A DNA stretch of 64,000 nucleotides from Ranitomeya imitator (GCF_032444005.1 NC_091283.1:765266001-765330000); one strand, 5' to 3'; positions 18,521-58,841 are shown, counted from the stretch's first letter. Numbers and translations: made by a program. Notes: generated by a model not told the origin, from the letters alone.

Positions 18521-18549
18521 AGTTTTGCGGGCCTGATCGTCCTACTCCT

Positions 18550-19650: not shown

Positions 19651-19934
19651 CCCCTCGCTTACCTGATAGAAGCCGGCGTCTCCTTTTGCAGCTCCGCTGC
19701 ACGACCACTCCACTTCCGGCGTTTCAGGCAGCAGCGCGGCACCCGTCCTTCCTGCTTCGCGCTCTTTTCGGCTGGCTCCGCCCACGAAGGTACGTCTTCT
19801 CCTCCTCGCGCTCCACGCTGCACGGCAATGGCGGATTTTGGCAGGAAATGACACAGTCTTCCAGCACAAACAGTTCAAATACAATTCTGGCACAGTTCTT
19901 AGGCGCACATGACCTGATTTTCAGGCTTAAGTAG

Positions 19935-24095: not shown

Positions 24096-25072
24096 CAGTT
24101 ATATGAAAAATTTTGGGCACCCCTATTAATCTTAAGCTTAATGTTTTATAAAAATTGTTTTTTTTTGCAACAGCTATTTCAGTTTCATATATCTAATAAC
24201 TGTTGGACACAGTAATGTTTCTGCCTTGAAATTAAGTTTATTGTACTAACAGAAAATGTGCAATCTGCATTCAAACAAAATTTGACAGGTGCATAAGTAT
24301 GGGCACCCCACCAGAAAAGTGACATTAATATTTAGTAGATCCTCCTTTTGCAAAAATAACAGCCTCTAGTCACTTCCGGTAGCTTTTAATGAGTTCCTGG
24401 ATCCTGGATGAAGGTATTTTTGACCATTCCTCTTTACAAAACAATTCCAGTTCAGTTAAGTTTGATGGTCGCCGAGCATGGACAGCCCTCTTCAAATGAT
24501 CCCACAGATGTTCAATGATATTCAGGTCTGGGGACTGGGATGGCCATTCCAGAACAGTGTAATTGTTCCTCTGCATGAATGCCTGAGTAGATTTGGAGCG
24601 GTGTTTTGGATCATTGTCTTGCTGAAAGATCCATCCCCTCCATAACTTCAACTTTGTCACTGATTTTACTGTGGGTAGCAAGTGTTTTTCTTGGAATGCT
24701 GTGTGTTTTGGCCGCCATGCATAACGCCTTTTTGTATGACCAAACAACTCAATCTTGGTTTCATCAGTCCACAGGACCTTCTTCCAAAAAGAAACTGGCT
24801 TCTCCAAATCTGCTTTTGCATACCTCAGCCGACTCTGTTTGTGGTGTGCTTGCAGAAACGGCTTCTTTCGCATCACTCTCTCATACAGCTTCTCCTTGTG
24901 CAAAGTGCGTTGTATAGTTGACCGAAGAACATTGACACCATCTGCAGCAAGTTGATGCTGCAGCTCTCTGGAGGTGGTCTGAGGATTGTCCTTGACTGAT
25001 CTCACCATTCTTCTTCTCTGCCTTTCTGATGTTTTTCTTGGCCTGCCACCTCTGGCCTTAACAAGAACTGTA
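24096..25072 (-). mobile_element. 5'-truncated Tc1 (DD34E) with in-frame internal deletion
   Basis: TA|CAGTTATATGAAAAA TIR; ORF 24370-25008 with WTDETKIELFG and FQQDNDPKH..WPSQSPDLNIIE (34 residues); the GGGSIM..WGC segment is missing. Confidence 0.9.
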
Positions 25073-28135: not shown

Positions 28136-28625
28136 TCCGGAATACTGACACCCACTCTGCAATCCATCTCAAGGGGTTAAATTGTTTACAACCAAGAGTG
28201 GTGCTATTGCTACCACTCCGACTGTAAACCACTGTGTAATGAATGAAAAGCTGCCTGTGCAGCCTCCTCGCCTGACCAGACATGAACTCTGTAGCATGGG
28301 AAAGTTTCTGAACTTTTTCCCATGCTGTCAAGTTCACCTCAGATCAGGCGGGGCCGCTGTGCAGCCTTAGTGACTACCGCTGACATCACTGAGCATGTGC
28401 AGACTCACAGCCTGACCTGAGGTGGACTTGACAACGTGGGAAAAAGTTCAAAAACTTTCCCACGCTACAGAGTTCATGTCCGGTCAGGCGGTGAGGCTGT
28501 GCAGGCAGATTTTCTTTCATTACACAGTGGTCTACAGTCGGGACGGTAGCATTAGCACCGCATACGGTTGTAAAGTATATATCCCCCAGATATGGATTAC
28601 GCCATGGGACTGACTGTATTCCGGA
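28136..28625. repeat. Diverged fold-back repeat (arms ~230 bp) in a composite MITE
   Basis: tccggaatac..gtattccgga; arms roughly 80% identical; ORFs 28116-28337 and 28422-28613 are mirror copies. Confidence 0.65.
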
Positions 28626-34628: not shown

Positions 34629-35305
34629 CCGTATAAACTCGAGTATAAGCCGACCCGAGTATAAACCACCCCCCTAATTTTGCAACAAAAAACTGGGAAA
34701 ACGTGATGACTCGAGTATAAGCCTAGGGTGGAAAACGCAGCAGCTACCAGTAAATTTCAAAAGTAAAAATAGATACCAATAAAAGTAAAATTAATTGAGA
34801 CATCAGTAGGTTAAGTGTTTTTGAATATCCATATTGAATCAGGAGCCTCATATAATGCTCCATAAAGTTTGATGGGCCCCATTAGATGCTCCATATTAAA
34901 ATATGCCCCATATAATCCTGCATAAAGGGTAATAAGGGCCCCATAAGATGCTCCATAGAGATATTTGCCCTATATAGTGCTGCACAAGCGTTATGACCCC
35001 ATAAGATGCTCCGTACAGTCACTTGCCCCTTATAGTGCTGCACAAACGTTATGGCCCCATAAGATGATCCATACAGTCACTGCCCCATATAGTGCTGCAC
35101 AAACGTTATGGCCCCATAAGATGCTCCGCACAGCCACTTGCCCCTTATAGTGCTGCACAAGTGTTATGGCCCCATAAGATGCTCCGTACAGCCACTTGCC
35201 CCTTATAGTGCTGCACAAGTGTTATGGCCCCATAAGATGCTCCGTACAGCCACTTGCCCCATATAGTGGGCTGAAAATCTTGGCTTATACTCGAGTATAT
35301 ACCGG
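34629..35305. mobile_element. pogo/Tigger-type MITE carrying a 58-bp minisatellite (~34938-35262, 5-6 copies)
   Basis: TA|CCGTATA.ACTCGAGTATAAGCC termini; unit gccccataagatgctccgtacagccacttgccccttatagtgctgcacaagtgttatg. Confidence 0.85.
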
Positions 35306-35456
35306 TACTACAGAATCTGCCGCCCCCTCTCTTCTGCCGCCTGAGCCAAAGAGCTCAAATCACCTAATGGTAGCAGCGTCACTGCCACCTATATACTGTT
35401 TGAACCTGCACACAGCCCCTTCTATATATCATATAAGTCACCACACAGCCCCTTAT

Positions 35457-38400
35457 TGTGAGGAAACAGACAGTGTGTGCAGTGCATACACACTAGAGAG
35501 AGAGAGGACTGTACCGAAGAAGACTGTACTTACCGTTCGCACACTCCAGACAGGGAGGGAAGGAGAGAGTAGCAGGCTGATGCGGTGGTGTCAAGAGACA
35601 CAGACAAGGACCTGGCGGGTCATGTGACCAGAGCGGGAAGGTCCTAAAGACAAGAGCTAGCACCCGAGCGTACTGAGGGGTGCAAGGCTGAAAATAAGAG
35701 TCGGCAGCGCAGGGAGCGAGGTCAGACAAGCTAAGGTCAGTAACAGGAGGACAGCGCAGGACAAAAGGAGTGAGGCAAAAACATAGTAAGGTGTCAAGCC
35801 GGAGACAATTAACCATAGAACAGAACAACAAAGTACAGAATCAACAGGCAATAGCAAAGTGGGGGACAGACCAGATCAGCAACAGGAAATATTCATGCAG
35901 AGCAGGCACAAGGCACAAACGCACAAAACACCAGGGTCAACTTAACTCAGCCGAGGGCAGGCATATAACTGACAAGGACTCGAGCAAACCAAGGCTATAA
36001 AAAGCCCTCCCAGAACCAGAAAGAGGCCACAAATAATTAACCCCTGGCACATCAATCCAAAAAATACCATAGGATCATGACAGTACCCCCCTCTCAAAGG
36101 GGGGCCACTAGACCCCCAAGCCCCTCCGGATGCTTGGCATGAAATGCTCAAACCAGACGATCCACATGTACCAAGTGAGCAGGGACCCAGGAGCGATCCT
36201 CCGGCCCATACCCCTTCCAGTTAACTAGATATTGCAAGGAGCGAGCATACTCCATGTGACCCTCCACCAACAACGGAGAAGCCACAGACCCAGGATCCTC
36301 TATGACTGATCCCAATGGTTTCAACGGGGATTTATGGAATACATTTGATATTTTAAACGCGGCAGGAAGACGCAACCTAAATGCCACCTGGTTGACTATT
36401 TCTACAATCTCATATGGACCAATGAATTTTGGTCTCAATTTGGCTGACTGAACCATAAGATTGATGTTCCATGTGGAAAGCCAAACCTTCTCCCCCACCT
36501 GAAATATGTGCCCCGGAGTTCTCCTTCTATCTGCAAACCCTGGAGATATTCCGGCGGACTTCAGCCCACAGATCTTTTAACTGCTGAATGGATCCCTCCG
36601 CCCCCGGGCACCCGGAATCTAATCGCAGAAATTCCCCCAAATTCCCCAAAATGTGGACTAAACGCATAGTTGACCAAAAATGGGGACATACCGGTGGATT
36701 AATTCACCTGATTGTTAAAAGCAAATTCAGCCAAAGGTAGAGCATCACACCAGTTATCCTGTCTGACAGAGGTCAAACACCTAAGAATCTGTTCCAGGCA
36801 TTGATTCGTGCATTCAGTCTGGCCATTGCTCTCCAGGTGATATGCAGAAGAGAACGATAACGAAATGCCCAATTTCTTACAAACTGAACACCTCTGTAAG
36901 ACACCCCATTCAGGGGTACCCCATGCAAGCGGACCACATGCTGCACAAACAACCTAGACAAAGTGTCAGCTGAGGGCAAAGCCGCTAAGGGAACAAAATG
37001 GGCCTGCTTTGAAAACCTGTCCACCACTACCCATATCACAGTATTGCCCCTAGAAGGCGGGAGACCGGTGACAAAGTCCATAGACAGATGAGTCCATGGC
37101 ATATCGGGAACCGGCAAAGGCACCAATTCGCCAGCGGGCCTGCCATGGGAGCTTTTGAATCGGTCACAAACCTGACATGCAGATATGAATTTTCTGACAT
37201 CAGAACCTAGTGAGGGCCACCAAAAAACCCTGGCCACTGCCTGTCGTGTGGCCGTGATACTGGGATGGACACTAAGTCTGGACTCATGAAATTCCTGTAG
37301 AAGCTTAGAACGCAAATGTTCAGGAACAAACAATTTATCCCCAGGCTTAGAAGCAGGGGCTAGAGATTGGGCCCCCACAATCTCTCATTCCAACTCAGAC
37401 GAGACCCCCACCACCACCACCACCCCAGGACAAAGAATGGAAGGTGGCGGTTTGGGGGAAGATATGGGCTCAAAACTTCTGGACAAGGCATCTGCCTTAA
37501 CATTCTTGGAACCAGGACGAAAAGTAATAGAAAACTGAAACTGTGAAAAAAAGGAACCAACGAGCCTGTCTAGGAGTCAGTCTTTTTGCAGACTCGATAT
37601 ATACCAAATTTTTATGATCCGTGATTACGGTATGGTATGAGCCGCCCCTTCCAAAAAGTGCTTCTATTCTTCGAATGCCAAATTAATCACAAGAAGTTCT
37701 CCATTGCCCACATTATAATTTTTCTCAGCGGACGAGAACTTCCTGAAAAAAAAGCACAGGGTTTGAGGTTAAAGTGGCAGGACCCTGGGACAACACTGCC
37801 CCCAACCCCACCTCAGAAGCGCCCACCTCCACAACAAATGGTTTGGACAAGACTGGTTGAATCAAAATTGAAGCAGACATAAAACATTTTTTGAGTGCCA
37901 AGAAGGACTTCTTGGCGGGCCCAGACCAATTTCTTTCATCCTCCCCCTTGCGGGTAAGATCAGTAAGAGGTTTAACCGCTTGTGAAAATCACTTAATGAA
38001 CTTTCGATAATAATTTGCTAATCCCAAGAAGAGCTGCAGCCCCTTAAGATCTCATGGTTGCACCCAGTCTGCAATCGCCTACACCTTCTTGAGATCCATG
38101 TGAAACCCCTCACAGGAGACAATAAGACCCAAAAAAGATAGTTCTTGAACAAAAAATGAGCATTTTTCCAAATTAACAAACAACTATTTTGCTCTGAGTC
38201 TTTGGAGAACCGTTCTTAAATGTTGTAAATGAGTCTGACTGTCCGGGGAATACACTAAAATGTCATCCAAATAAATAATAACAAAGCGGACTATGAGGTC
38301 CGCGAACACTATATTAATGAAATTTTAAAAAATAGCAGGAGCATTAGTGAGTCCAAATGGCATGACCAGATTTTCAAAGAGTCCAACTGATGTGAGGAAT

Positions 38401-41140
38401 GCCATTTTCCACTCGTCCCCCTCCTGAACCCTTATCAGATTGTAAGCCCCGAAGATCTAATTTGGAGAACCATTTGGCCCCTGATAACTGGATACACAAA
38501 TCTGGGATAAGGGGAAGAGGGTAGGCTATTTTGTTTAGTTCCCGAAAGTCGAGGCCGGGACGCAGACCGCCATCTTTTTTCTTAACAAAAAAAACCCGGC
38601 AGCCACAGGAGGAACGGAAGGCCGTATATGCCCCTTACTGAGGCTTTCCGCAATATACTTCTTCATGGCTAACTGCTCAAGACCAGACAAATTGAACAGA
38701 CGCGCTTTCAGTAACTTAGCCCCTGGGACTAACTCAATGGCACAATCAAAGGGTCTATGAAGCGGTAAAACCTCTGTCTCGCTTTCGGAAAACACATCCT
38801 CAAAGTCTTTCAGGTACTCCGTAATACCTTCCAGACCGACAGACGACACAGAGACAGATTTTACTGGTACAGATAATAATGCAGATTCACAACAATGGTT
38901 AATACAATTAGGACCCCATTGCACAATTTCCCTCATCTCCCTATTGATAGGGCATACCCAACACCAACCCAGCTGGTAAATTCTCCAAAACAAAACAACT
39001 TATTTTCTCAGTGTGATCAGAGCCCACTTTGAATGAGAAGACTTCCGAGACATAACGAATCCCTTCTTTGGTGAGGGGAGAAGAGTCAATGGCCACCACT
39101 TTAACAGGAGTCTGGACTCTAAAGGTACCGTCACACTTAGCGACGCTGCAGCGATACCGACAACGATCCGGATCGCTGCAGCGTCGCTGTTTGATCGCTG
39201 GAGAGCTGTCACACAGACCGCTCTCCAGCGACCAACGATCCCGAGGTCCCCGGTAACCAGGGTAAACATCGGGTAACTAAGCGCAGGGCCGCGCTTAGTA
39301 ACCCGATGTTTACCCTGGTTACCAGCGTAAAAAAACAAACAGTACATACTTACATTCAGCTGTCTGTCCCTTGCCGTCTGCTTCCTGCACTGACTGCTGG
39401 CCGTAAAGTGAAAGTGAAAGCAGAGCACAGCCACAGCGGTGAGTCACCACTGTGTGACTCACCGCTGTGCTGTGCTTTCACTTTCACTTTACGGCCAGCA
39501 GTCAGTGCAGGAAGCAGACGGCAAGGGACAGACAGCTGAATGTAAGTATGTACTGTTTGTTTTTTTACGCTGGTAGCCAGGGAAAACATCGGGTTACTAA
39601 GCGCGGCCCTGCGCTTAGTTACCCGATGTTTACCCTGGTTACCAGTGAAGACATCGCTGAATCGGTGTCACACACGCCGATTCAGCGATGTCTGCGGGGA
39701 GTCCAGCGACCAAATAAAGTTCTGGACTTTCTTCCCCGACCAGCGACATCACAGCAGGGGCCTGATCGCTGCTGCCTGTCACACTGGACGATATCGCTAG
39801 CGAGGACGCTGCAACGTCACGGATCGCTAGCGATATCGTCTAATGTGACGGTACCTTAACTGTCCCTATCTTGCATTGGGAAATGAGGGCTAACCAAGTT
39901 GATGGACGAACTGCAATCCACAAAAGCTGTAGAAAAAAAAGGAGAACCGTCCACTAAAGGTTCCACCTGCAGCAAAACTTTGAAACATGAGGACTAGTGT
40001 ACCTGAAGATCTGGATAGCCTCCTTGACTACTACCCAGACCGCTGCCTTGGATGATGAGGGGCAGGAGGGACAGTCCTTCCTCCAGCATCCTGATTCTCC
40101 ACAATAGAAGCACAACTGCTTCTCGCGGCGGCATCTTCTCTCTTTCTCCTTAAAGGTGATGGCGCCCACCTCCATAGCTTCAGGAGTAGGCCCCACCTCG
40201 CCTCCATTGGAGAACAATGGTGTTTCAAATTGCATAACACCCATAGTCTGTGATCCATACGAACCACTTGGGTCATGGCGTCTTCCAGGTAGTCCGGTAG
40301 AGGATGAAGTGCCAAGGCATCCTTTAGACATTCAGACAGGCCTCTATGAAACAAACCCCGGAGGGTGGCATCATCCCAAGAAACCTCAGCAGCCCAACAT
40401 CTGAATTCTGAACAAAACCACTCAGCCGAGTGTTTCCCCTGACAGACAGTCATCACCATGTCCTCAGCCAAGTGCACGCGATCAGGCTCATTATAAATGT
40501 GCCCTAGAGCCTCAAAAAATGCACCCACAGACACTCTCTTAAGGGCTGTAGAGGGGAGGGAAAACGCCCAGGCTTCCAGAGCCCCCCTAAGCAGAGACAT
40601 AACCACTCCCACCCTCTGATTCTCATCCCTAGAGGAGCGGGGTCTAAGGGAGAAAAATAGCTTACAGCCCTCCTTAAACACTCTGAATTCTTTTTTATTA
40701 CCAGAAAACGTATCGGGCAACTTGACCGGGGGTTCGGGAGAAACTAAAGCGACGTCCCTAGCCCCCGCCCCCTGAATCCCCGAGGCCAGAACCCCCTGAA
40801 CAGTATCCGCATCCTGCTGGTGTTACTGATCTAGGGCACGCTGCTCCAAGTTTAGCTTCTGCAGCATCTGAATCAGGTGTTTCACCTGCTCAGACAGAGC
40901 CTGCATTGGGTCCATACTACAGGGGGGGAAAGGTACTGGTCAGTTATAATGTGAGGAAACAGTGTGTGCAGTGCATACACACTAGAGAGAGAATGGACTG
41001 TACCGAAGAAGACTGTGCTTACCGTGCGCACATTCCAGACGGGGAGGGAAGGAGAGAGTAGCAGGCAGAAGCGGCGGTGTGAAGAGACACAGACAAAAAC
41101 CTGGCGGGTCACATGACCAGAGCGGGACGGTACTGAACTT
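35457..41140 (-). mobile_element. Chromodomain Gypsy (chromovirus, Tf1/sushi-type), decayed; 5' LTR truncated
   Basis: 3' LTR 35457-36082 preceded by PPT GAGAGGGGGGTAC; 5' LTR remnant 40950-~41140. gag ORF 40031-40720 with CFYCGESG zinc knuckle; RT YLDD (~38265); RNase H; integrase ORF 36773-37378; GPY/F (PKFIGPY) and chromodomain YLVNWKGYGPEDRSW in ORF 36148-36498. Confidence 0.92.
39123..39856. mobile_element. PIF/Harbinger fold-back MITE inserted in chromovirus pol
   Basis: AGGTACCGTCACA / TGTGACGGTACCT; TSD TAA; hairpin interior. Confidence 0.9.
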
Positions 41141-42609: not shown

Positions 42610-44315
42610 CCGTATATACTCGAGTATAAGCCGAGATTTTCAGCCCAAATTTTTGGGCTGAAAGTGCCCCTCTCGGCTTATACTCGAGTCACGGTGGGTG
42701 GCAGGGTCGGCGGGTGAGAGGGAGAGGGCGCTGAGGCATACTTACCTAGTCCCGGCGATCCTGGCGCTCCCCCTGCCGTCCCACGGTCTTCGGGCGCTGC
42801 AGTTCTTCCCCTGTACAGCGGTCACGTGGGACCGCTCATTAGAAAAATAAATATGGACTCCACTCCCATAGGGGTGGAGCCGCATATTCATTTCTCTAGT
42901 CAGCGGTAATGGTGACCGCTGATAGAGGAAGAGGCTGCGGCACCGAAGACCAGCTGTCCGGGAGAAGGAGCAGGTAAGTATGTCATATTTACCTATCCCC
43001 GTTCCACACGCCGGGTGTCGCTCCATCTTCCCGGCGCCACTCCATCTTCCCGGCGTCTCTACACTCTGACTGTGCAGGTCAGAGGGCGCGATGATGCATA
43101 TAGTGTGCGCGCCGCCCTCTGCCTGATCAGTCAGTGCGGAGAGACGCCGGGACCGGACGCTGGGAGCTGCAAGCAAGAGAGGTGAGTATGGCATTTTTTT
43201 TTTTATTGCAGCAGCAGCAGCAATGGCAGAGCTTTCTATGGTACATCAATGGGGCAATAATGAACGGTGCAGAGCACTATATGGCACAGCTATGGGGCAA
43301 TAATGAACGGTGCAGAGCACTATATGGCAGAGCTATGGGACAAAAATGAACGGTGCAGAGCACTATATGGCACAGCTATGGGGCAATAATGAACGGTGCA
43401 GAGCACTATATGGCAGAGCTATGGGACAAAAATGAACGGTGCAGAGCACTATATGGCACAGCTATGGGGCAATAATGAACGGTGCAGAGCACTATATGGC
43501 AGAGCTATGGGACAAAAATGAACAGTGCAGAGCACTATATGGCAGAGCTATGGGACAAAAATGAACGGCGCAGAGCACTATATGGCACAGCTGTGGGACA
43601 AAAATGAACGGTGCAGAGGACTATATAGCACAGCTATGGGACAAAAATGAACGGCGCAGAGCACTATATGGCACAGCTGTGGGGCAAAAATGAACGGTGC
43701 AGAGCACTATATGGCACAGCTATGGGACAAAAATGAACGGTGCAGAGTACTATATGGCACAGCTATGGGACAAAAATGAACGGTGCAGGGCACTATATGG
43801 CACAGCTATGGGGCAATAATGAACGGTGCAGAGCACTATATGGCACAGCTATGGGACAAAAATGAACGGTGCAGAGCACTATATGGCACAGCTATGGGGC
43901 AATAATGAACGGTGCAGAGCACTATATGGCACAGCTATGGGGCAATAATGAACGGTGCAGAGCATTGTATATGGGGCACAGCTTTATATGGAGCATCTAT
44001 GGGGCAATAATGAACTGTATGGAGCATTATATGTGGCACATTTTTATATAGAGCATCTTATGGGCCCATCATGAACTGTTTGGAGCATTATATGGGGCTC
44101 CTGATTCAATATGGATATTCAAAAACACTTAACCTACTGATGTCTCAATTAATTTTACTTTTATTGGTATCTAATTTTATTTTTGACATTAACCGGTAGC
44201 TGCTGCATTTTCCACCCTAGGCTTATACTCGAGTCAATAAGTTTTCCCAGTTTTTTGTGGCAAAATTGGGGGTGTCGGCTTATACTCGGGTCGGCTTATA
44301 CTCGAGTATATACGG
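42610..44315. mobile_element. pogo/Tigger-type MITE, same family as 34629-35305 in opposite orientation
   Basis: TA|CCGTATATACTCGAGTATAAGCC..GGCTTATACTCGAGTATATACGG|TA. Confidence 0.85.
43258..43970. repeat. 43-bp minisatellite, ~16-17 copies, two interleaved variants
   Basis: atgaacggtgcagagcactatatggcacagctatggggcaata versus ..ggcagagctatgggacaaaa variant. Confidence 0.95.
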
Positions 44316-47300
44316 TAATTGAAACTAAACAGTCCCCATTATAGTTAAGCAATATTAGTTGGCATGACTATTCTTGGGTCTGACTTTAAAAATATAGGAT
44401 GTCAAGCATGAAAATCGCTATTTGTCCCTTATTTTGTGTAAATGGTCTGCAAACAATGAATGAATCTATACCCAACTTTAAAATTGCACTCCCTGTTGAT
44501 CCTCACCCCTAAAGTACATCACTTTGTTTTGTACTTTAGCTGGTATTTTTGGTTGAAGAAGTAACAATTCTACAATTGTAGTGGAAGAGGTTGCCTGAAC
44601 TTGTTGCCCAACACCTTTCAGAGAGGGATAGTGGTGTGCTAGGCAATGTGCCCACGATCAACATCTCTGTAAGAGAAATTGATATGCTGCGGATCTGAAA
44701 GACGCGCCAGTCAGTCTCTGCAGGTGATCTGCAGGTGCACATAAACGCACAGTGGACGTGGGATTTCTAGAAATCCCATCCACTATGCTGTAACATCTGG
44801 CCGCTGCATTTTTGATGCTGCATAAATCGCGTTAGGAATCTTACTACATTTAGCCTGTAACCATTCCTTTGTTGCAGTGGAGGGGGCAATCGGCTGATTT
44901 TACTTTAGCTACTCTAACTGTTGGTGACCCCTCTGTGCTTCAGCTCCGCTGCTACATTTATCTCTTTTTATTCCCTACTAAAAGTTTCTGACTGTATATA
45001 AATGCTCTGCTGGACTACATTGTCTCCTGACTACCCCAGTATTGACCACAGCTAGCCTTGTAGCTAAGATTCTGCTCTTCCTTTTTGTGTTCTATATGCC
45101 ATTGCAATGATCCACACTGCTTCTTTATGTTTCTGGTTTCAGCATCCAGGGAATATATATGAATCTGTGATCAGGTTTTTGCCACCTAATCTGAGAGCAG
45201 CAAGAGACAGGGACCGAGACCCTGATTCCCGCGGTTCACTTCCTCGGCTGTTTACTGCAGTTTTGATAAAATTACTGATTTATCAGCAGGATATTATCTC
45301 TAGGGGACTAGTAAACCTACTGCTACTTAGTCCTCCATATTCATCAGCTCTGTGTACCCTGCCCCCACCACTAATTTGCAGCTTTCTGCCTATGAACAGT
45401 GTACACAGAAAGCTGACAGTGATATATACAGGGTTCATCATTCAGAGAACGGGAAGTTCTGTGGTAAACAAAAGTGATTTTAGCAAAACTACAGCAATCA
45501 GCCCAAGTGATATGTTGCTGTAATCAGTGTCTCTGCCCTTACATCATGCTGCTCTCAGATGGGTTAGCAAAAAACCTTGTGACAGATTCCATTTAATTGA
45601 GTACTAGACAACCGACACATACTGCCATCTTGGGGCAAACTGAGACGCCAGACCATAAACAAAGGCATCTGAAGAGAAGTTACTACAGGTGACCTATATC
45701 GTTCTTTCTCTGGACGTTATATTACATTACATTATGGCCAAATTAGCTCTTTAATAAAAACCCAAGTCCTGCTATTTACCATGATATCCGGAAAGCAGCA
45801 ATGCCGTATTTCTCATTAGTAAATTACATAGGGAATTGACACAATCGACATGATAAAGTTTGTTCTTTTTTGCTAATTTTACTTCTTCACTCTAGAAGTC
45901 AGAGGCCATAATGTCTGAATGTTATCAGCTCATGAATCCACGGCTTTGTAAAATGAATTTACAACCTGCACTCCGATTTATACCTCCTTTATCAAACACC
46001 ATACGCACATAATACGTGTGTGCAACCTGTATCTCAAACAACACATGAGGGGCGCAGCCGGGAAACAAAACCGCCATTCATTGTCTTGTTCCAAAGCTTT
46101 TCTTTGAGGGATTGTTATCATTCAGAAGCAGAGTTCTCTAAAAGCCATCAGCTATATGCAGGGAATAATGGCCTTCTTTATCTGGGATACAACAGCCCTG
46201 AGTACACCAAAATAATGCTGAAGTCACATTTACATATTGGGGCCGAAGATGGAAAACAAGACGTAATTCTACATCCAGGTGATAGTAATCCTGTTACTAT
46301 GGCATTCTGTTATTAATGAAATGACATATTTCTCACTGGGATGTTTATTGAAGAATTTGGAGATTAGCGCACTCGTCAGACAAACAGGACTGTCACCTAC
46401 AACAGCAGATTGAATATGTACCTGCTTCCATTTAAGACTTACACTTATACGGTTTATGAACATGGCGGTATTGGGACATATTCACATGTAACAAAGTTGT
46501 TGCAGAAATTTCTGTGACTGTCTGTTTAAAGGGAATCTGTGAGCAGGATTTCACCCCAGTAGTGTATCATCCATATGTTTCGTCAAACTCAATCTGACAG
46601 GTGCCCCGCCCCTATCAAAGTGTATCAAAGTGTGTAACCCCTCCCCTCCCCTTGTCTGACAGCTAGTAGCCAGCTGTCCCTCCTTGTTTGATTTCCCCTT
46701 TTGATATAGTTTTATATAGTTTTATATTAGCTTTTTGATAATCCCCCTATTAGATGGCTGTGGTATATAATTATATCCTAGGATCTGTACGATTACATAC
46801 TGCATTCGGTAATCAGGGCAGTGTGTTTTATTCATGTTTTTATAACACACCATGTTTGATTTTGGTAATTTGATTCTGGGATAACACATGTTTATAATTA
46901 TATCCTAGTCGTGTATTTATTTTACACGTGGTTTATAACACCTTTCTCATTATATGGGCACATTATGTATGTGGCCATATTACAACACACGCAAGTAAGA
47001 AGCGGTGTGTTTTATTGGCTGGCTTCCCCTTTTGATATAGTTTGATATAGTTTGATATAGTTTTTATGCTTATAATGCATATTTATTTACATGGTTTACT
47101 GATAGTACTATACTGCTACGGGCTTATTTTTGTACAAATCCAGGCTGTTTGCTGATCCCCTTTTTGTATTCGCTTTCTCTTTGTGCCTGTAGATGTTATC
47201 TGAGGGTCATTTGCCCGGAGGTGTTATGGGGGTTTTTGCTTATAATGCATATTTATTTACATGGTTTACTGATAGTACTATACTGCTACTGGCTTATTTT

Positions 47301-47605
47301 TGTACAAATCCATGCTGTTTGGTGATCCCCTTTTTGTATTCGCTTTCTCTTTGTGCCTGTAGGTGTTATCTGAGGGTCATTTGCCCGGAGGTGTTATGGT
47401 ATATAATTATATCCTAGGGTCTGTACGATGTTTATATTAGCTTTTTGATAATCCCCTATTAGATGGCACCGTTATAAAATTATATCCTAGTTGTTTGTGA
47501 GCTTGGTGCTGAGCTTGGTGCTGTAACACACCATGGCGTCTTATATATTTTATATCCTAGTCGTGTATTTATTGACACGATATTGTAAAAATTTAAAAAA
47601 ATATT

Positions 47606-48088
47606 TTATTGTTGAAAAATAAATACATCTCAAAGACATTTCAATACTATAAAAATTCTTACAGAATATAAAAAGTAAAAACATTAAATAGTACAATGAA
47701 CATACATCATTACACATCTTACAAAATAATTAATATAGCGTTACAAGGCAAGTACAGCATTTATCCTTATTGTTGAAAATAAATACATCTCAAAGACATT
47801 TCAATACTATAAAAATTCTTACAGAATATAAAAAGTAAAAACATTAAATAGTACAATGAACATACATCATTACACATCTTACAAAATAATTAATATAGCG
47901 TTACAAGGCAAGTACAGCATTTAGCCTTATTGTTGAAAAATAAATACATCTCAAAGACATTTCAATACTATAAAAAATTCTTACAGAATATAAAAAGTAA
48001 AAACATTAAATAGTACAATGAACATACATCATTACGCTTCTTACAAAATAATTAATATAGCGTTACAAGGTAAGTACAGCATTTATCC
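47606..48088. repeat. AT-rich ~160-bp tandem repeat x3 (mirror copy ~56039-56520)
   Basis: Units start at 47606, 47767 and 47927 (ttattgttgaaaa..). Confidence 0.9.
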
Positions 48089-50954
48089 AGCTGTCACATC
48101 CCCCTCCGACAAAAACAGACGGGCATTTTACACAAGCAGGAAAAAAGGAAACAAGTTACCCACACTTAGCAAATTAGCCACAAGCAGGAAGATAAAAAAG
48201 TACGGGCATATGTTGCATAATTTTAGCACATTTCCTGTGCCACAGTATATTTTTTCATGTGCAGCTTTATTAGTCATTTAGGACTTATTTATGTTATCAT
48301 GTTTTTGCACTTTATTAATATGCGGTCCATATAGGTCAGTGAGATAGATATCTGTATGTGTGCCTGTTTTCCCCTTTGCACCTTGTGTACAGGCAATGGC
48401 CATATTATAGGCATTGTGGGTATTCGCTTTCTCTTTGTGCCTGTAGGTGTTATCTGAGGGTCATTTGCCCGGAGGTGTTATGGGGTTTTTTGCTTATAAT
48501 GCATATTTATTTACATGGTTTACTGATAGTACTATACTGCTACTGGCTTATTTTTAGGTGGGCATTACTGGCGGATTCAATCGCCTGTTTGAATTTAGGT
48601 ACTGCTACCAGTGTGTGCGTACTGCATTATATGCCATATATCTATAGGGCATTACCACTGAGTTCAGGAACCCATGTCGGCACTCTGTATGCCTTCAGCG
48701 CATTTTGTATATCTTAGCAGTTTATATACTCAGTTAGTGCGGCTTATTTATGTGTACTGCGTTACGTGCCATCTATCTATGGGGGCCTAGTTTAGTACTG
48801 GCATATGCTGCATAATTGTAGCACATTTCCTGTACCACAGTATATTTATTCATGTGCAGCTTTATTAGTCATTTAGGACTTATTTATGTTATCATGTTTT
48901 TGCACTTTATTAATATGTTGTCCATATAGGTCAGTGAGATATATATCTGTATGTGTGCCTGTATTCCCCTTTTCACCTTGTGTACAGGCACTGGACATAT
49001 TATAGGCATTGTGGGTATTCGCTTTCTCTTTGTGCCTGTAGGTGTTATCTGAGGGTCATTTACCCGGAGGTGTTATGGGGGGGGGGGTTTGCTTATAATG
49101 CATATTTATTTACATGGTTTACTGATAGTACTATACTGCTACGGGCTTATTTTTGTACAAATCCATGCTGTTTGGTGATCCCCTTTTTGTATGGCCTCTG
49201 CTTTTTCTTGTTTTTTGTGTAAAAATCTCTGGCAGACAGGCACAACTGTATCTCTACAAGACATGCTGGACACACCAGAGACATTGGAAATTGGGGTTTA
49301 TAATGCCGAATTCAGAAAATACCCATTTTATATTGAATGACTAATGATTTCTATAGGCATACTTTACTATGAAATTATGCATAAAAATCTTCTTGGTTAG
49401 CCCAAAACCCGTAAGAAACATACGTATAACTTTTAGCTCGACCACATCAGCATATATTATTCCAGTTTTTTGTTGAATTAAAAATTATACAGTTATTTCA
49501 TATTTTTGGGGCTTACTTCCAGGAGAAATTATTGATAGAAACCCAAAGTTTTGATACGTGTATGAAAATACACCAATATTAACTTTTTGGCCTATTTTTG
49601 GCTCAAATTTGGTCTATATGTATAACAGACCGGAGTGGGGCGAAGAAATATGTGGTACATGCGTAGTGAATTGCAAGCATATTCTGCAGTGTATGGCATT
49701 TTGAGAAATGTATAGCATAACCAATTACCTATCACGGCCACTAGATGGCAGAATAGCATATTAATTATACATTGGGGTTTACTTTTGGAAACTTACAAAT
49801 TCATTGGAAATTTTTAAGCCATTATTGCTTAGGCAAATTCATTGGAAATTATAAATTTATTATACTAACTACAGGCACGCATATTGATAAAACTTTACTT
49901 CAGCCTCAATGACCCATGTAATTTTTTTGTTGAATTAAAAATTATACAGTTATTTCATATTTTTTTGGGGCTTACTTCCAGGAGAAATTATTGATAGAAA
50001 CCCAAAGTTTTGATAAGTGTATGAAAATACACCAATATTAACTATTTGTGCTATTTTAGGCTCAAATTTGGTCTATATGCATAACAGTCAGGAGTTGGGT
50101 CGAAGAAATATGTGTTACATGCGTGATGAATTGCAAATATATTCTGAAGTGTTTGGCATTTTGAGAAATGTGTAGCATAACTAATTACCTATCACGGCCA
50201 CTAGATGGCAGAATATCATATTAATTATACATTGGGGTTTACTTTTGGAAACTTACAAAGGCGGTGTGTATGTGCACAGGTATGACTTATTTTGTTTTTA
50301 TAATCACTAGTATTCATATTAATAGTTACTTTTAACCAGCCTTTTAGAGTGTCTAGTAGTTTTATATTCTTTGTCTGATATATTTCTACACAAAGCTTCA
50401 AAACTATTTTGTGCTTTATAATGTATCACAGTAGTTTCATGTGAAGTTACATCTTAGGCGCTGTTCAGACTATTGTAATATCTGTAGCTTAAAATAGAGC
50501 CAAATAGCTACTTTCAAACCCGGACATACACCATTGATTTTCTTCACAAATGGATCCAATATACACTATATCTCCTTCCTCTCTCTCTCTCTCTCTCTCT
50601 ATATATATGTAGTTTGTAACATTCTGGTTCAAATACAGACGGCAGGCATCCTATTTACACTGCACTTCATAAAATCTTTCGTTTGATAGGTTATTCTGTA
50701 TTTCTAAAGCGCAACTCTGTGTCGATAAGCGAGTAATTCTAAAAGCACAGTCAAACATATGTATCACAGTTTATTTTTCTGCGTTATGGTTTAAAGTTAT
50801 AATCATTTTAATAATAATTTTCTCATTAGATATGGGACTTGCACTATTTATTTGCTTAGGCTAGATAATTTACAGTTTAACAATACATTTTATCACAAAA
50901 AATGACCTTATCTGGGGACCTAGAAATAACCTAGCAGCATTAGTAATCCCCTTA

Positions 50955-51687
50955 AGGTACCTTCACACATAACGATATTGTTAACGATATCGTTGCTTTT
51001 TGTGACGTAGCAACGATATCGTTAATAAAATCGTTACGTGTGACAGCGACCAACGATCAGGCCCCTGCTGGGAGATCGTTGGTCGCTGAATAAAGTCCAG
51101 AACTTTATTTCGTCGCTGGACTCCCTGCTGACATCGCTGGATCGGCGTGTGTGACACCGATCCAGCAATGTCTTCACTGGTAACCAGGGTAAACATCGGG
51201 TAACTAAGCGCAGGGCCGCGCTTAGTAACCCAATGTTTACCCTGGTTACCATCCTAAAAGTAAAAAAAACAAACAGTACATACTTACCTACCGCTGTCTG
51301 TCCCCGGCGCTGTGCTCTGCTCTCCTCCTGCACTGGCTGTGAGCGTCGGTCAGCCGGAAAGCAGAGCGGTGACGTCACTGCTCTGCTTTCCGGCCGCTGT
51401 GCTCACAGCCAGTGCAGGAGGAGTGCAGAGCACAGCGCTGGAGGACAGACAGCGGTAGGTAAGTATGTACTGTTTGTTTTTTTTACTTTTAGGATGGTAA
51501 CCAGGGTAAACATTGGGTTACTAAGCGCGGCCCTGCGCTTAGTTACCCGATGTTTACCCTGGTTACCGGCATCGTTGGTCGCTGGAGAGCTGTCTGTGTG
51601 ACAGCTCTCCAGCGACCAAACAGCGACGCTGCAGTGATCCGGATCGTTGTCGGTATCGCTGCAGCGTCGCTTAATGTGAAGGGGCCT
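50955..51687. mobile_element. PIF/Harbinger fold-back MITE present only in the left arm
   Basis: AGGTACCTTCACA / TGTGAAGGGGCCT; TSD TTA; the right arm (~53140-53155) shows the empty site ATCCCCTTACTTTT. Confidence 0.92.
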
Positions 51688-52227
51688 TTACTTTTTGCAT
51701 TATCAAGAATCCTTGGGTTAAGATAATGTAAGTTTATATGCATAAAGCATTTAATATAGTGCACCAAACATGATATGGTTTTTGATTTCTCTGAACTGTC
51801 GCAAACAAAACATATAAGGTTAAAAATATGAATATTATTGAATATAATGTTTTACTTTTGTTTACAGTATTTTATTTTCCTGGTGTTACTTTTGTTCATG
51901 TACTACTGGCTTCTTCTTCAGTTGTGATTTTTACCTTTTCTATATAAATATGGGTAAATGAATTGTCCATTATAGAACCATTTTGAATCCGTTCTTTGGC
52001 GGCCTTAAACATTTTGTATAACAGCTGTGTTTCTCCTGATTTTCTTGGTTAAGGGATCACTGATGTTTTAATAAACTTTGAATAAATAACTGGGCATACA
52101 TAAGAAACCTTGCAATATATCTTTATAGAAATAATACTTCTGCACTCATGGCCACTTCTCCGCCACCTTTGTCTCCTGAACTCATCATTCACTGTCAAAT
52201 AATGCAAAAATTCATCTTTGTATTTCT

Positions 52228-52524
52228 TGTGTGTGTGTGTGTGTTCTGTGTGTTTGTTGTGTGTGTTGTGTGTGCTGCATGTGTTGTAAGTGTTCTGTAT
52301 GTTGTGTGTGTGTGTGTATGTTTGTCGTGTGTGTTGTATGTGTTGTGTGTGTTTTGTATGTTATGTGTGTTTGTTGTGTGTGTGGGTTCTGTGTTGTGTG
52401 TGTGTGTTCTGTGTGTTTGTTGTGTGTGTTCTGTATGTTGTGTGTGTTCTGTATGTTGTGTGTGTATGTTTGTTGTATGTGTTGTGTGTGTTCTGTATGT
52501 TATGTGTGTTTGTTGTGTGTGTGT
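52228..52524. repeat. Degenerate (TG)n-rich simple repeat forming most of the fold-back spacer
   Basis: tgtgtgttctgtatgttg-type units. Confidence 0.95.
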
Positions 52525-53482
52525 CTGCAGCCATCTCCTTTCTGTAATTCTCCTCTCTCTTTACAGAACCATAAACTTATAATGGCAAAATGTTGCTGCC
52601 TCCGTCAATACAAAGATGAATTTTTGCATTATTTCACAGTGAATGATGAGTTCAGGAGACAAAGGTGGCGGAGAAGTGGCCATGAGTGCAGAAGTATTAT
52701 TTCTATAAAGATATATTGCAAGGTTTCTTATGTATGCCCAGTTATTTATTCAAAGTTTATTAAAACATCAGTGATCCCTTAACCAAGAAAAATCAGGAGA
52801 AACACAGCTGTTATACAAAATGTTTAAGGTCAACAAAACACGGATTCAAAATGGTTCTATAATGTACAATTCATTTACCCATATTTATATAGAAAAGGTA
52901 AAAATCACAACTGAAGAAGAAGCCAGTAGTACATGAACAAAAGTAACACCCGGAAAATAAAATACTGTAAACAAAAGTAAAACATTATATTCAATAATAT
53001 TCATATTTTTAACCTTATATGTTTTGTTTGCGACAGTTCAGAGAAATCAAAAACCATATCATGTTTGGTGCACTATATTAAATGCTTTATGCATATAAAC
53101 TTACGTTATCTTAACCCAAGGATTCTTGATAATGCAAAAAGTAAGGGGATTACTAATGCTGCTAGGTTATTTCTAGGTTCCCAGATAAGGTCATTTTTTG
53201 TGATAAAATGTATTGTTAAACTGTAAATGATCTAGCCTAAGCAAATAAATAGTGCAAGTCACATATCTAATTAGAAAATTATTATTTAAATGATTATAAC
53301 TTTAAACCATAACGCAGAAAAATAAACTGTGATACATATGTTTGACTGTGCTTTTAGAATTACTCGCTTATCGACACAGAGTTGCGCTTTAGAAATACAG
53401 AATAACCTATCAAACGAAAGATTTTATAAAGTGCAGTGTAAATAGGATGCCTGCCGTCTGTATTTGAGCCAGAATGTTACAA

Positions 53483-53487
<5 letters not shown>

Positions 53488-53544
<57 letters not shown>
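53488..53544. repeat. (TA)n microsatellite; the left-arm counterpart near 50579-50608 is (CT)n(AT)n
   Basis: Direct reading. Confidence 0.9.
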
Positions 53545-53548
<4 letters not shown>

Positions 53549-56500
53549 GGAGATATAGTGTATATTGGATCCATTTGTGAAGAAAATCAATGGTGTATGT
53601 CCGGGTTTGAAAGTAGCTATTTGGCTCTATTTTAAGCTACAGATATTACAATAGTCTGAACAGAGCCTAAGATGTAACTTCACATGAAACTACTGTGATA
53701 CATTATAAACTACAAAATAGTTTTGTAGCTTTGTGTAGAAATATATCAGACATAGAATATAAAACTACTAGGGAAAAGGATTCTATTTGTAGGATGTCTC
53801 TTACTCATAAAGCTAAAGAGGCATTTAATATGAATACTAGTGATTATAAAAAAAAAAAAATAAGTCATCCTGTGCACATACACACCGCCTTTGTAAGTTT
53901 CCAAAAGTAAACCCCAATGTATAATTAATATGATATTCTGCCATCTAGTGGCCGTGATAGGTAATTGGTTATGCTACACATTTCTCAAAATGCCAAACAC
54001 TTCAGAATATATTTGCAATTTATCACGCATGTAACACATATTTCTTCGACCCAACTCCTGACTGTTATGCATATAGACCAAATTTGAGCCTAAAATAGCA
54101 CAAATAGTTAATATTGGTGTATTTTCATACACTTATCAAAACTTTGGGTTTCTATCAATAATTTCTCCTGGAAGTAAGCCCCCAAAAATATGAAATAACT
54201 GTATAATTTTTAATTCAACAAAAAAATTACATGCGTCAGAGGCTGAGGTAAAGTTTTATCAATATGCGTGCCTGTAGTTAGTATAATAAATTTATAATTT
54301 CCAATGAATTTGCCTAAGCAATAATGGCTTAAAAATTTCCAATGAATTTGTAAGTTTCCAAAAGTAAACCCCAATGTATAATTAATATGCTATTCTGCCA
54401 TCTAGTGGCCGTGATAGGTAATTGGTTATGCTATACATTTCTCAAAATGCCATACACTGCAGAATATGTTTGCAATTCACTACGCATGTACCACATATTT
54501 CTTCGCCCCACTCCGGTCTGTTATACATATAGACCAAATTTGAGCCAAAAATAGGCCAAATAGTTAATATTGGTGTATTTTCATACACTTATCAAAACTT
54601 TGGGTTTCTATCAATAATTTCTCCTGGAAGTAAGCCCCAAAAATATGAAATAACTGTATAATTTTTAATTCAACAAAAAACTGGAATAATATATGCTGAT
54701 GTGGTCGAGCTAAAAGTTATACGTTTGTTTCTTACGGGTTTTGGGCTAACCAAGAAGATTTTTATGCATAATTTCATAGTAAAGTATGCCTATAGAAATC
54801 ATTAGTCATTCAATATAAAATGGTTATTTTCTGAATTCGGCATTATAAACCCCAATTTCCAATGTCTCTGGTGTGTCCAGCATGTCTTGTAGAGATACAG
54901 CTGTGCCTGTCTGCCAGAGATTTTTACACAAAAAACAAGAAAAAGCAGAGGCCATACAAAAAGGGGATCACCAAAGCCCGTAGCAGTATAGTACTATCAG
55001 CAAAACCATGTAAATAAATATGCATTATAAGCAAACCCCCCCTTCCCCCATAACACCTCCGGGTAAATGACCCTCAGATAACACCTACAGGCACAAAGAG
55101 AAAGCGAATACCCACAATGCCTATAATATGTCCAGTGCCTGTACACAAGGTGAAAAGGGGAACACAGGCACACATACAGATATATATCTCACTGACCTAT
55201 ATGGACAACATATTAATAAAGTGCAAAAACATGATAACATAAATAAGTCCTAAATGACTAATAAAGCTGCACATGAAAAAATATACTGTGGTACAGGAAA
55301 TGTGCTAAAATTATGCAGCATATGCCAGTACTAAACTAGGCCCCCATAGATAGATGGCACGTAACGCAGTACACATAAATAAGCCGCACTAACTGAGTAT
55401 ATAAACTGCTAAGATATACAAAATGCGCTGAAGGCATACAGAGTGCCGACATGGGTTCCTGAACTCAGTGGTAATGCCCTATAGATATATGGCATATAAT
55501 GCAGTACGCACACACTGGTAGCAGTACCTAAATTCAAACAGGCGATTGAATCCGCCAGTAATGCCCGCCTAAAAATAAGCCAGTAGCAGTATAGTACTAT
55601 CAGTAAACCATGTAAATAAATATGCATTATAAGCAAAAACCCCCATAACACCTCCGGGCAAATGACCCTCAGATAACACCTACAGGCACAAAGAGAAAGC
55701 GAATACCCACAATGCCTATAATATGGCCATTGCCTGTACACAAGGTGCAAAGGGGAAAACAGGCACACATACAGATATCTATCTCACTGACCTATATGGA
55801 CCGCATATTAATAAAGTGCAAAAACATGATAACATAAATAAGTCCTAAATGACTAATAAAGCTGCACATAAAAAAATATACTGTGGCACAGGAAATGTGA
55901 TAAAATTATGCAGCATATGCCTGTACTTTTTTTTATCTTCCTGCTTGTGGCTAATTTGCTAAGTGTGGGTAACTTGTTTCCTTTTTTCCTGCTTGTGTAA
56001 AATGCCCGTCTGTTTTTGTCGGAGGGGGATGTGACAGCTGGATAAATGCTGTACTTACCGTGTAACGCTATATTAATTATTTTGTAAGAAGTGTAATGAT
56101 GTATGTTCATTGTACTATTTAATGTTTTTACTTTTTATATTCTGTAAGAATTTTTTATAGTATTGAAATGTCTTTGAGATGTATTTATTTTTCAACAATA
56201 AGGCTAAATGCTGTACTTGCCTTGTAACGCTATATTAATTATTTTGTAAGATGTGTAATGATGTATGTTCATTGTACTATTTAATGTTTTTACTTTTTAT
56301 ATTCTGTAAGAATTTTTATAGTATTGAAATGTCTTTGAGATGTATTTATTTTCAACAATAAGGATAAATGCTGTACTTGCCTTGTAACGCTATATTAATT
56401 ATTTTGTAAGATGTGTAATGATGTATGTTCATTGTACTATTTAATGTTTTTACTTTTTATATTTTGTAAGAATTTTTATAGTATTGAAATGTCTTTGAGA

Positions 56501-58841
56501 TGTATTTATTTTTCAACAATAAAATCTTTTTTTAAATTTTTACAATATCGTGTCTTTGGTTTTATATTTTATATGCTTACTTGCGGGTGTTGTAATATGG
56601 CCACATACATAATGTGACCATATAATGAGAATGGTGTTATAAACCACGTGTAAAATAAATACACGACTAGGATATAAAATATATAAGACGCCATGGTGTG
56701 TTACAGCACCAAGCTCACAAACAACTAGGATATAATTTTATAACGGTGCCATCTAATAGGGGATTATCAAAAAGCTAATATAAACATCGTACAGACCCTA
56801 GGATATAATTATATACCATAACACCTCCGGGCAAATGACCCTCAGATAACACCTACAGGCACAAAGAGAAAGCGAATACAAAAAGGGGATCACCAAACAG
56901 CATGGATTTGTACAAAAATAAGCCAGTAGCAGTATAGTACTATCAGTAAACCATGTAAATAAATATGCATTATAAGCAAAAACCCCCATAACACCTCCGA
57001 GCAAATGACCCTCAGATAACATCTACAGGCACAAAGAGAAAGCGAATACAAAAAGGGGATCAGCAAACAGCCTGGATTTGTACAAAAATAAGCCCGTAGC
57101 AGTATAGTACTATCAGTAAACCATGTAAATAAATATGAATTATAAGCATAAAAACTATATCAAACTATATCAAACTATATCAAAAGGGGAAGCCAGCCAA
57201 TAAAACACACCGCTTCTTACTTGCGTGTGTTGTAATATGGCCACATACATAATGTGCCCATATAATGAGAAAGGTGTTATAAACCACGTGTAAAATAAAT
57301 ACACGACTAGGATATAATTATAAACATGTGTTATCCCAGAATCAAATTAACAATATCAAACATGGTGTGTTATAAAAACATGAATAAAACACACTGCCCT
57401 GATTACCGAATGCAGTATGTAATCGTACAGATCCTAGGATATAATTATATACCACAGCCATCTAATAGGGGGATTATCAAAAAGCTAATATAAAACTATA
57501 TAACACTATATCAAAAGGGGAAATCAAACAAGGAGGGACAGCTGGCTACCAGCTGTCAGACAAGGGGAGGGGAGGGGTTACACACTTTGATACACTTTGA
57601 TAGGGGCGTGTCCACCTGTCAGATTGAGTTTGACGAAACATATGGATGATACACTACTCACCCCCCAACATATTTATATGCTCATGTAGCTCTTTCAAAG
57701 ACAAGTCCAGCGATACCTTTACATGGCCAGTCTGTTCTTCCATTAGTGAGAAATCAGCATTTCTATTGATATGTAAATGAGCATAAAGAGCTATTTGTAG
57801 ATCTGAAGCTTCTGTCACTCCAGCTCTATTCCTCACTCAGTGACGCCTCTTCCTGCTTGACTGACAATCTCTGTGCTGTGTGACTTCAGGCAAAGGAGTC
57901 ATCAGTCATTCAGGTAAAGGAGATGGCACTAGGTGGGGAATAGAGCTGGAGTGACAGAGGTTTTAGATCTTCAAATAGCTCATTTACATATCAATTTAAA
58001 CACTGATTTCTCAGTGATGCATCAACGGATTGGCCATGTTAGGTATTGCTGGATTTGTCTTTGTAAGAGCTACATGCGCAAGAGCTAGATAGAGGCGTCA
58101 CACAAAGTCTCTGTTCACACCTGGGATTTTGAGACCCTTTTCTCCGTTCCATTCTATGAACAGACAAGGAGTTCACGTGAAAAACAGATGCGTTAAAGAG
58201 CTGCTGCAAACTGAAAAGGTGCCTTATCGACTATAAAGGGGTCTGTCTGGTTTGCATTCTGTGTCCATTTCTTCAGTGGAACAAACCGTTCTGCATGATG
58301 CAATTTTTAGGCCATTAAAAAAACGGACACAAAACAGAAACCAAATGGCTTTCTAAAGTCTTCTGTATATGCCCCAAATTAAGTGATTCGGATTATTCCA
58401 AGATCTAGTTGCTGATTTTTGTGGCTATCTATTTTCTGCTTGGAAGCTTCACTCATATGTAAATTTTGGATAGTGAGCCCCATGATTTGATCATAATAAT
58501 CTTATTACTGCCACTATTCCAGTTGATGGTGTCATGATGGTAGCACCGACTATTTCCTATATGTAAAGTCACCAGATGGAGCCCATTTAGTCAGTGGCGG
58601 ACTTCTGCTTCATTTTGTGTCTGTCCGGTTGCGGATCAGTTTTCCGTCTAAATTCAATTTATCTGTTCATAGAATTAAATAGAGAAAAATCAAAGCCTTT
58701 GTGGAACTGTACAACCTCCATGGATAGTCTGTCACCCAAAAAATGTTCTACAACATATGTGTTAGGTTAGTAACAGACTACAGCCCAATTAGGCCCTATG
58801 ATAATTGGGGTGAAAAAAATACTAATCCGACGAGAGGAACC

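Follow-up and report, generated by a model that had tools for sequence, protein, structure and literature searches.

The 64,000-bp stretch of the Ranitomeya imitator genome analysed here (GCF_032444005.1, NC_091283.1:765266001-765330000; hereafter the window, with all positions counted from its first nucleotide) contains an 11,101-bp palindromic element at positions 46558-57658, which starts with AGTAGT, ends with ACTACT and has a perfect duplication of CACCCC immediately outside both ends. We propose, with moderate confidence, that it belongs to the Maverick/Polinton type, is non-coding and non-autonomous, was integrated as a single unit and had acquired its palindromic form before integration. 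The termini, the target-site duplication (TSD), the near-identity of the two arms, the nature of the centre and the lack of genes are the observations that carry this proposal, and they are described first.

Direct reading at 46558 and 57658 confirmed the AGTAGT and ACTACT termini that had been named in the original prediction, an inspection of the same sequence in which the element was taken for a snap-back Polinton-like genome. The same applies to the 6-bp TSD that it had reported, since perfect copies of CACCCC (both unstranded) lie at 46552-46557 and 57659-57664, the latter abutting the right terminus. The left end of the element is AGTAGTGTATCATCC and the right end is its exact reverse complement, finishing with ACTACT; the full order across both junctions is CACCCC, then AGTAGTGTATCATCC ... 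GGATGATACACTACT, then CACCCC. The outermost 42 bp are the same at both ends, and the terminal 25-mer occurs at only two sites in the window, namely the two element ends, with zero occurrences expected by chance. The boundary of the inverted repeat is exact at AGTAGT because the next bases outward are non-complementary: the inverted repeat halts precisely there, and the six bases outside it form a direct, not an inverted, repeat. The length of the duplication is 6 bp, and a reading of 8 bp fails to match. Beyond these six bases, the outer flanks are unrelated, non-complementary DNA that have only the duplication in common.

The two arms were delimited by inverted-repeat pairs and collinear BLAST blocks. 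The left arm (46558-52224, plus strand) is 5,667 bp in length, including a nested MITE (miniature inverted-repeat transposable element), and the right arm (52607-57658, minus strand) is 5,052 bp in length and ends with ACTACT. They are collinear from the termini to the centre, with identities of 96.7-98.0% in the BLAST blocks. When the left arm was aligned as two separate pieces flanking the nested MITE, each against the right arm, an identity of 98.3% was obtained; the 4,897 aligned columns include 83 substitutions, and 15 gap events were counted. The reverse complementarity over ~4.9-5 kb claimed in the original prediction is borne out by the collinearity across all of these columns, and its estimate of ~98% identity with several indels, which had been made from 330 bp, holds over the same length. 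Once one divergent block is set aside, the divergence between the arms is 1.1%. This block is non-homologous between the arms (50281-50352 in the left arm vs. 53772-53868 in the right arm). In addition, the right arm contains an extra internal duplication of ~100 bp (within 56555-56703) compared with the left arm, and a microsatellite is represented by (CT)n(AT)n in one arm and by (AT)n in the other. Outside the non-homologous block, the substitutions comprise 23 transitions and 27 transversions. About half of the arm substitutions fall in tandem-repeat blocks, and exchange between tandem units may have added to this odd spectrum of differences.

The most conspicuous difference between the arms is the nested MITE, a PIF/Harbinger-like copy of 733 bp (50955-51687, unstranded) that is flanked on each side by a TTA duplication and is present only in the left arm; the right arm is uninterrupted where the left arm holds it. 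A second copy, 79% identical to the first and flanked by a TAA duplication, is located at 39120-39853, inside a Gypsy-like element. The members of this family are ~730 bp in length, GC-rich and strongly self-complementary, and carry the terminal inverted repeat (TIR) AGGTACC(G/T)TCACA. A 3-bp TWA duplication is the pattern of PIF/Harbinger elements. The nested MITE is a later arrival and no part of the original element. The presence of a MITE in only one arm, together with the unrelated outer flanks, indicates that the structure is real and old and entered the site as one unit. Since then the element has aged in place, its arms being 1.1-1.7% apart and differing by 15 indels, the non-homologous block and the MITE.

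Each arm is AT-rich and consists largely of tandem duplications, and the nested MITE aside, the repeats within an arm are direct repeats only. In the left arm (plus strand), the terminal ~505 bp (46558-47062) are without tandem duplication and contain short repeated motifs. Four tandem blocks, defined with Tandem Repeats Finder and a repeat search, follow toward the centre: two copies of a 170-bp unit (47063-47399; mirror copy at 56816-57153), three copies of a very AT-rich 160-bp unit (47606-48088, GC content ~0.24; mirror copy at 56040-56522), two copies of a ~595-bp unit, each with part of the 170-bp unit inside it (48199-49154; mirror copy at ~55045-55927), and two copies of a ~457-bp unit (49466-50259; mirror copy at ~53890-54646). 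The innermost ~2 kb of each arm, up to the centre, is unique sequence. The centre itself (52225-52606, unstranded) measures 382 bp, in agreement with the ~380-bp spacer of the original prediction, and is composed of a degenerate (TG)n-like tract (52227-52524) and 82 bp of unique sequence. The microhomology at the junctions between arms and centre does not exceed 1-2 nt. No second terminus-like sequence was found near the centre or elsewhere in the element; there is one kind of end only, which is doubled in inverted orientation together with the adjoining ~5 kb, and any second end is absent. Had two complete, two-ended monomers been joined tail to tail, a terminus-like sequence would be expected by the centre, and such a dimer was rejected for lack of one.

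To assess coding capacity, the left arm and the centre were divided into stop-to-stop pieces; the 92 that reached 35 aa or more were each compared with Pfam, and 20 of them were re-scanned singly. None of the 92 pieces matched a polymerase, integrase, protease, ATPase or capsid protein, and none scored above the cut-off of any Pfam family. A weak match to PC4 (E = 0.0015, with ~0.14 such matches expected by chance) was sub-threshold and was discarded. The longest open reading frame (ORF) in the arms specifies 119 aa and is encoded by a strand rich in T and poor in A, where the AT skew falls to -0.38, a composition that alone would deplete stop codons in this region; no homologue of this ORF was found in the protein collection. 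Two further ORFs of 183 and 144 aa run through the microsatellite. By exact look-up in the protein collection, none of 10 arm ORFs and none of 8 ORFs of neighbouring transposable elements was present. Likewise, no Rfam family and no tRNA gene (ARAGORN) was detected anywhere in the window. Two earlier statements are upheld by these data and by the dimensions given above, namely that the element lacks genes for pPolB, integrase and capsid proteins, and that it is nearly all TIR, with ~5-kb arms around the 382-bp centre.

The ends and the TSD point to the class of the element. The commonest end motif of vertebrate Mavericks is (AGT)2//(ACT)2, (AG)3//(CT)3 also being found, and their TSDs are perfect and 6 bp in length (PMC8097293). 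The Maverick-like signature recognized in the original prediction, i.e. (AGT)2//(ACT)2 with a perfect 6-bp TSD, agrees with this published diagnostic for vertebrates. A 6-bp TSD is characteristic of Polinton; IS3EU/GingerRoot elements also generate 6 bp, with ends that are TA..TA or, rarely, TG..CA (PMC10045372). IS3EU/GingerRoot, which agrees with the element in TSD length, was rejected as a candidate on account of the AG..CT termini, and a Galileo-type foldback element, for which a 7-bp TSD is expected, was rejected on account of the 6 bp observed. To judge from the sequence of the junctions, the integration event was probably due to a Maverick-type integrase, because the ends and the 6-bp TSD fit Polinton, whereas the ends of IS3EU/GingerRoot and the 7 bp of Galileo do not. 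Dada elements generate duplications of 6-7 bp and target small-RNA or tRNA genes; this candidate was also rejected, since such target genes would be expected but no Rfam family or tRNA gene is present in the window.

The element differs from intact Mavericks in gene content and in proportions. The genes by which Mavericks are defined, pPolB and integrase together with capsid, protease and ATPase genes, are all absent, and an element that lacks all of them can be no more than a non-autonomous associate of Mavericks and does not itself count as one. Intact vertebrate Mavericks range from 12.7 to 24.6 kb in size and have TIRs of 46-1,447 bp (PMC8097293), and the ~5-kb arms of the present element are ~3.5 times as long as the largest of these TIRs. 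Intact Mavericks have been found in two anurans, Xenopus tropicalis and Rhinella marina; one amphibian copy measures 12,723 bp and the other, as calculated from the listed coordinates, 13,973 bp, with TIRs of up to 1.4 kb and without accessory regions (PMC8097293). Given the absence of accessory regions and the short TIRs, the terminal 5 kb of an amphibian Maverick should hold several kilobases of core genes. Remnants of such genes would still show in arms that are 98-99% alike, and as no gene remnant is present, the parent of the palindrome cannot have been a typical autonomous genome and would already have been non-coding.

Under the proposal that we favour, the starting point would be a linear parent replicon, already a gene-less and repeat-rich passenger. 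An autonomous Maverick would supply in trans the integrase for 6-bp staggered integration and the protein-primed polymerase for any replication, and the terminal trinucleotide repeat would serve jumping-back initiation, a step of protein-primed initiation in which the terminal repeats of Mavericks are expected to function (PMC8097293). During protein-primed, strand-displacing replication, a strand switch may have occurred at a distance of ~5.4 kb from one of the ends, microhomology being slight or absent. Copying back to the same end would then have generated a molecule with two identical ends, both of them competent for initiation and integration. In this scheme, the palindrome would precede integration, and the product would be about twice the size of its parent and nearer to the length of amphibian Mavericks. 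Before the arrival of the MITE, the element was ~10.4 kb in size, which corresponds to 74-81% of the sizes of the two amphibian Mavericks, and a single arm plus the centre corresponds to ~40%. This approach in size is at best suggestive; we regard it as a coincidence and do not count it as evidence.

Replication products of a comparable kind are on record for other replicons. For adenovirus, a protein-primed virus, the vector literature describes replication-induced recombination via internal inverted repeats as well as tail-to-tail dimers (work cited in PMC2518115), and undersized helper-dependent adenovirus genomes rearrange toward the wild-type length (PMC4189039). Snap-back defective genomes are a recognized class (PMC13506859).

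Several points weigh against the favoured proposal. At the level of sequence, the link to any Maverick ends at the 6-nt motif. No Maverick gene was found within the 64-kb window, and the helper is assumed. Neither the terminal 20-mer nor a subterminal 22-mer had a match among the viral contigs of IMG/VR. The terminal 20-mer did match two short JGI metagenome contigs (L001:333-352 and L002:458-477), but these matches were dismissed as chance and do not represent a relative, because they lie within compact prokaryote- or phage-like ORFs and the contigs are otherwise dissimilar to the window. One copy is seen among the window, viral and metagenome sequences that were compared. The similar numbers of transitions and transversions between the arms are unusual for germline decay. 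Moreover, cut-and-paste families such as Galileo also give rise to gene-less copies consisting of two TIRs, which have been extended by tandem repeats and by recruited internal sequence (PMC3573991); TIR growth of this sort means that a palindrome alone does not imply copy-back replication. Finally, a single locus cannot order the formation of the palindrome and the integration.

This last point leads to the best-surviving alternative, which we consider possible but rather unlikely, i.e. that an element of the same kind was integrated as a non-coding copy with short TIRs and that the palindrome was made afterwards in the chromosome. After a break within the element, repair would have used the inverted end as template, through gene conversion or break-induced copying between the TIRs, one interior half becoming the mirror of the other. 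The outer ends and the TSD would stay just as observed, Galileo copies are documented in which TIRs have been extended via recruited internal sequence (PMC3573991), the (TG)n-like centre is a plausible fragile or recombination-prone site, and a second fold-back copy, which would prove that the palindrome itself is mobile, was not found. On the other hand, this route needs two events, whereas the loss of one half and the mirror-image arm are both accounted for by a single error of replication, and a different second half has left no trace. The junction microhomology of 1-2 nt is compatible with both scenarios.

An improbable alternative is that the element is a fold-back, cut-and-paste transposon of another or undescribed superfamily with a 6-bp TSD, in which AGTAGT would be coincidental. 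Its build is in its favour: long, tandem-repetitive TIRs around a small centre are the classic architecture of Foldback, Galileo and Tetris (PMC3573991; PMC4079207). TIR length classifies elements poorly (PMC3573991), and Maverick genes share no sequence link with the element. The probability of AGTAGT at a fixed boundary by chance is, however, ~1 in 4,096. None of the superfamilies considered above fits either: the small-RNA genes targeted by Dada are missing from the window. The duplications of Galileo are 7 bp in length (PMC3573991), and those of IS3EU/GingerRoot, while 6 bp, accompany TA..TA or TG..CA ends (PMC10045372).

Slightly less probable still is an origin in which an autonomous Maverick of 13-17 kb had its end copied back directly, so that the arms would be the helper's own terminal 5 kb. 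The end motif, the TSD and the single kind of end agree with such an origin, and defective-genome precedents exist. The arms, no more than 1-2% diverged, nevertheless contain no detectable remnant of a polymerase, integrase, protease, ATPase or capsid gene, and in amphibian Mavericks, which are 12.7-14 kb in size, with TIRs of up to 1.4 kb and without accessory regions (PMC8097293), the terminal 5 kb would be mostly coding. The original prediction had stated that one genome end was duplicated into inverted arms; the part concerning a single kind of end stands, but the attribution to the end of an autonomous genome is not supported, the arms being gene-less.

That the palindrome is an artefact of the reads or of their assembly (through a chimeric read that folds back, or a repeat that was collapsed or wrongly joined) is hardly credible: long-read data are known to fail at large, near-perfect palindromes, and the transition/transversion ratio between the arms is odd, but the arms differ by a MITE with its own TSD, the ~100-bp duplication, the non-homologous block, microsatellites and 1.1% substitutions, and the flanks differ yet each abuts the same 6-bp TSD, whereas a fold-back would mirror the flank too.

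Comparison with known systems places the element between several of them. With vertebrate Mavericks/Polintons, it shares (AGT)2//(ACT)2, a perfect 6-bp TSD, the possession of TIRs and a host group, anurans, in which intact Mavericks are known (Barreat & Katzourakis 2021, PMC8097293). These Mavericks, however, carry core genes and are 12.7-24.6 kb in size with TIRs of 46-1,447 bp, whereas the present element is gene-less, 11.1 kb in size, has arms of ~5 kb and retains almost no unique interior. Rearranged and defective adenovirus genomes (PMC2518115; PMC4189039) derive from a protein-primed linear replicon, have one end at both termini in inverted orientation and depend on a helper, and the product outgrows an undersized parent; the doubled end is observed in the present element and the other features are proposed for it. 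They are, in contrast, extrachromosomal products of the laboratory or of infection whose viral cis signals have known functions, and the present element is a single, germline-integrated fossil. Highly symmetric palindromes that arise by the reverse-complementary copying of one end are also seen in snap-back or copy-back viral genomes (PMC13506859; for adeno-associated virus, PMC8235507). Such genomes are mostly those of RNA viruses and parvoviruses and are not known as TSD-flanked germline integrants.

Foldback-type elements, i.e. Drosophila FB, Galileo (PMC3573991) and Tetris (PMC4079207), are similarly gene-less, with two long, tandem-repetitive TIRs and a short centre, and the element exhibits this trait through the 170-, 160-, ~595- and ~457-bp tandem units in each arm. 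It differs from Galileo, a member of the P superfamily with a 7-bp TSD and TIRs of up to ~1.26 kb, by its 6-bp TSD, AGTAGT ends and 5-kb arms. Polinton ends that are duplicated inward well past a few hundred base pairs have been described in butterflies (bioRxiv 10.1101/2025.02.07.637071). The ~2-kb TIRs of those polintons contain hexon and adenain genes, and the elements are coding and apparently autonomous, in contrast to the gene-less element described here, which is nearly all TIR. No description of a TSD-flanked, gene-less and nearly fully palindromic element of the Maverick type was found in the accessible literature. Non-autonomous Polintons, which are catalogued in Repbase, are hardly mentioned in the open literature searched. 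As regards adenovirus, defective genomes with a duplicated end were reportedly described by Daniell in 1976.

Mavericks/Polintons have been argued to be viruses, and their replication in animals and their trans-acting abilities are known almost wholly by inference. A more specific version of the favoured proposal, which we put forward tentatively and with distinctly less confidence than the proposal itself, is that the locus preserves, as a fossil in the germline, a vertebrate Maverick's defective snap-back genome, that is, a gene-less satellite copied by the protein-primed polymerase of a helper, doubled into a palindrome closer in size to the helper genome, and integrated by the integrase of the helper. 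If true, it would provide sequence-level evidence for Maverick replication and integration acting in trans on defective genomes, analogous to the defective interfering genomes of adenovirus-like viruses. A palindrome of this kind with Maverick ends would show that defective passengers are served by the machinery of integration and probably by that of replication as well, and that the inward duplication of these ends can extend over kilobases. Should there be a family of copies, the constraints on size and the requirements in cis of Maverick ends could be approached descriptively through it, and it would define a repeat class that standard annotation leaves unclassified. Surveys of vertebrate Mavericks miss gene-less derivatives because they were seeded by polymerase and integrase matches (PMC8097293). 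The palindrome, if transcribed, could also yield hairpin small RNAs against elements that share the arms. The observation would be clearly interesting if a family and a matching helper are present in the host genome, and a curiosity if the copy is unique.

According to the original prediction, the element was inserted into the middle of a T2 MITE, a statement that the flanks do not confirm and that was rejected. A MITE-like palindrome of ~400 bp (57679-58080; 75% self-complementary; the sole copy in the window), which is probably what had been read as the T2 MITE and is the only one close to the site, is confined to the right-hand side of the insertion and starts ~15 bp past the duplication. 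The left flank is not significantly complementary to the DNA beyond this palindrome (complementarity score of 17, compared with a shuffle mean of 15.2 and a standard deviation of 2.2). The label T2, from Xenopus, is itself doubtful because the polymerase of a neighbouring Gypsy-like element matches dendrobatid frogs best, and then Bufo: the best matches of a 480-aa ORF bearing a reverse transcriptase (16104-17546) are in Phyllobates and Dendrobates (75%), followed by Bufo bufo (72%), a pattern that suggests a neobatrachian frog as the host. Three other hairpin-like inverted repeats with tiny loops, which probably represent other MITE families, were identified at 4755-5084 (162 nt, 100%), 12742-13077 (167 nt, 95%) and 28161-28598 (213 nt, 81%).

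The remainder of the window contains further repeats and transposon remnants. ORFs for Gypsy-like gag/pol are located at 15197-19708 and 36148-40720, both on the minus strand, and the region with the second of these elements is bracketed by a 202-nt inverted pair (34668-34869 and 44074-44275). Two tandem arrays were observed, one of ~23 units of 43 bp at 43097-44084 and the other of 57/58-bp units at 34937-35317. Remnants of Tc1/mariner-like transposase ORFs are found at 9273-9902 (plus strand, 209 aa) and 24370-25008 (minus strand, 212 aa).

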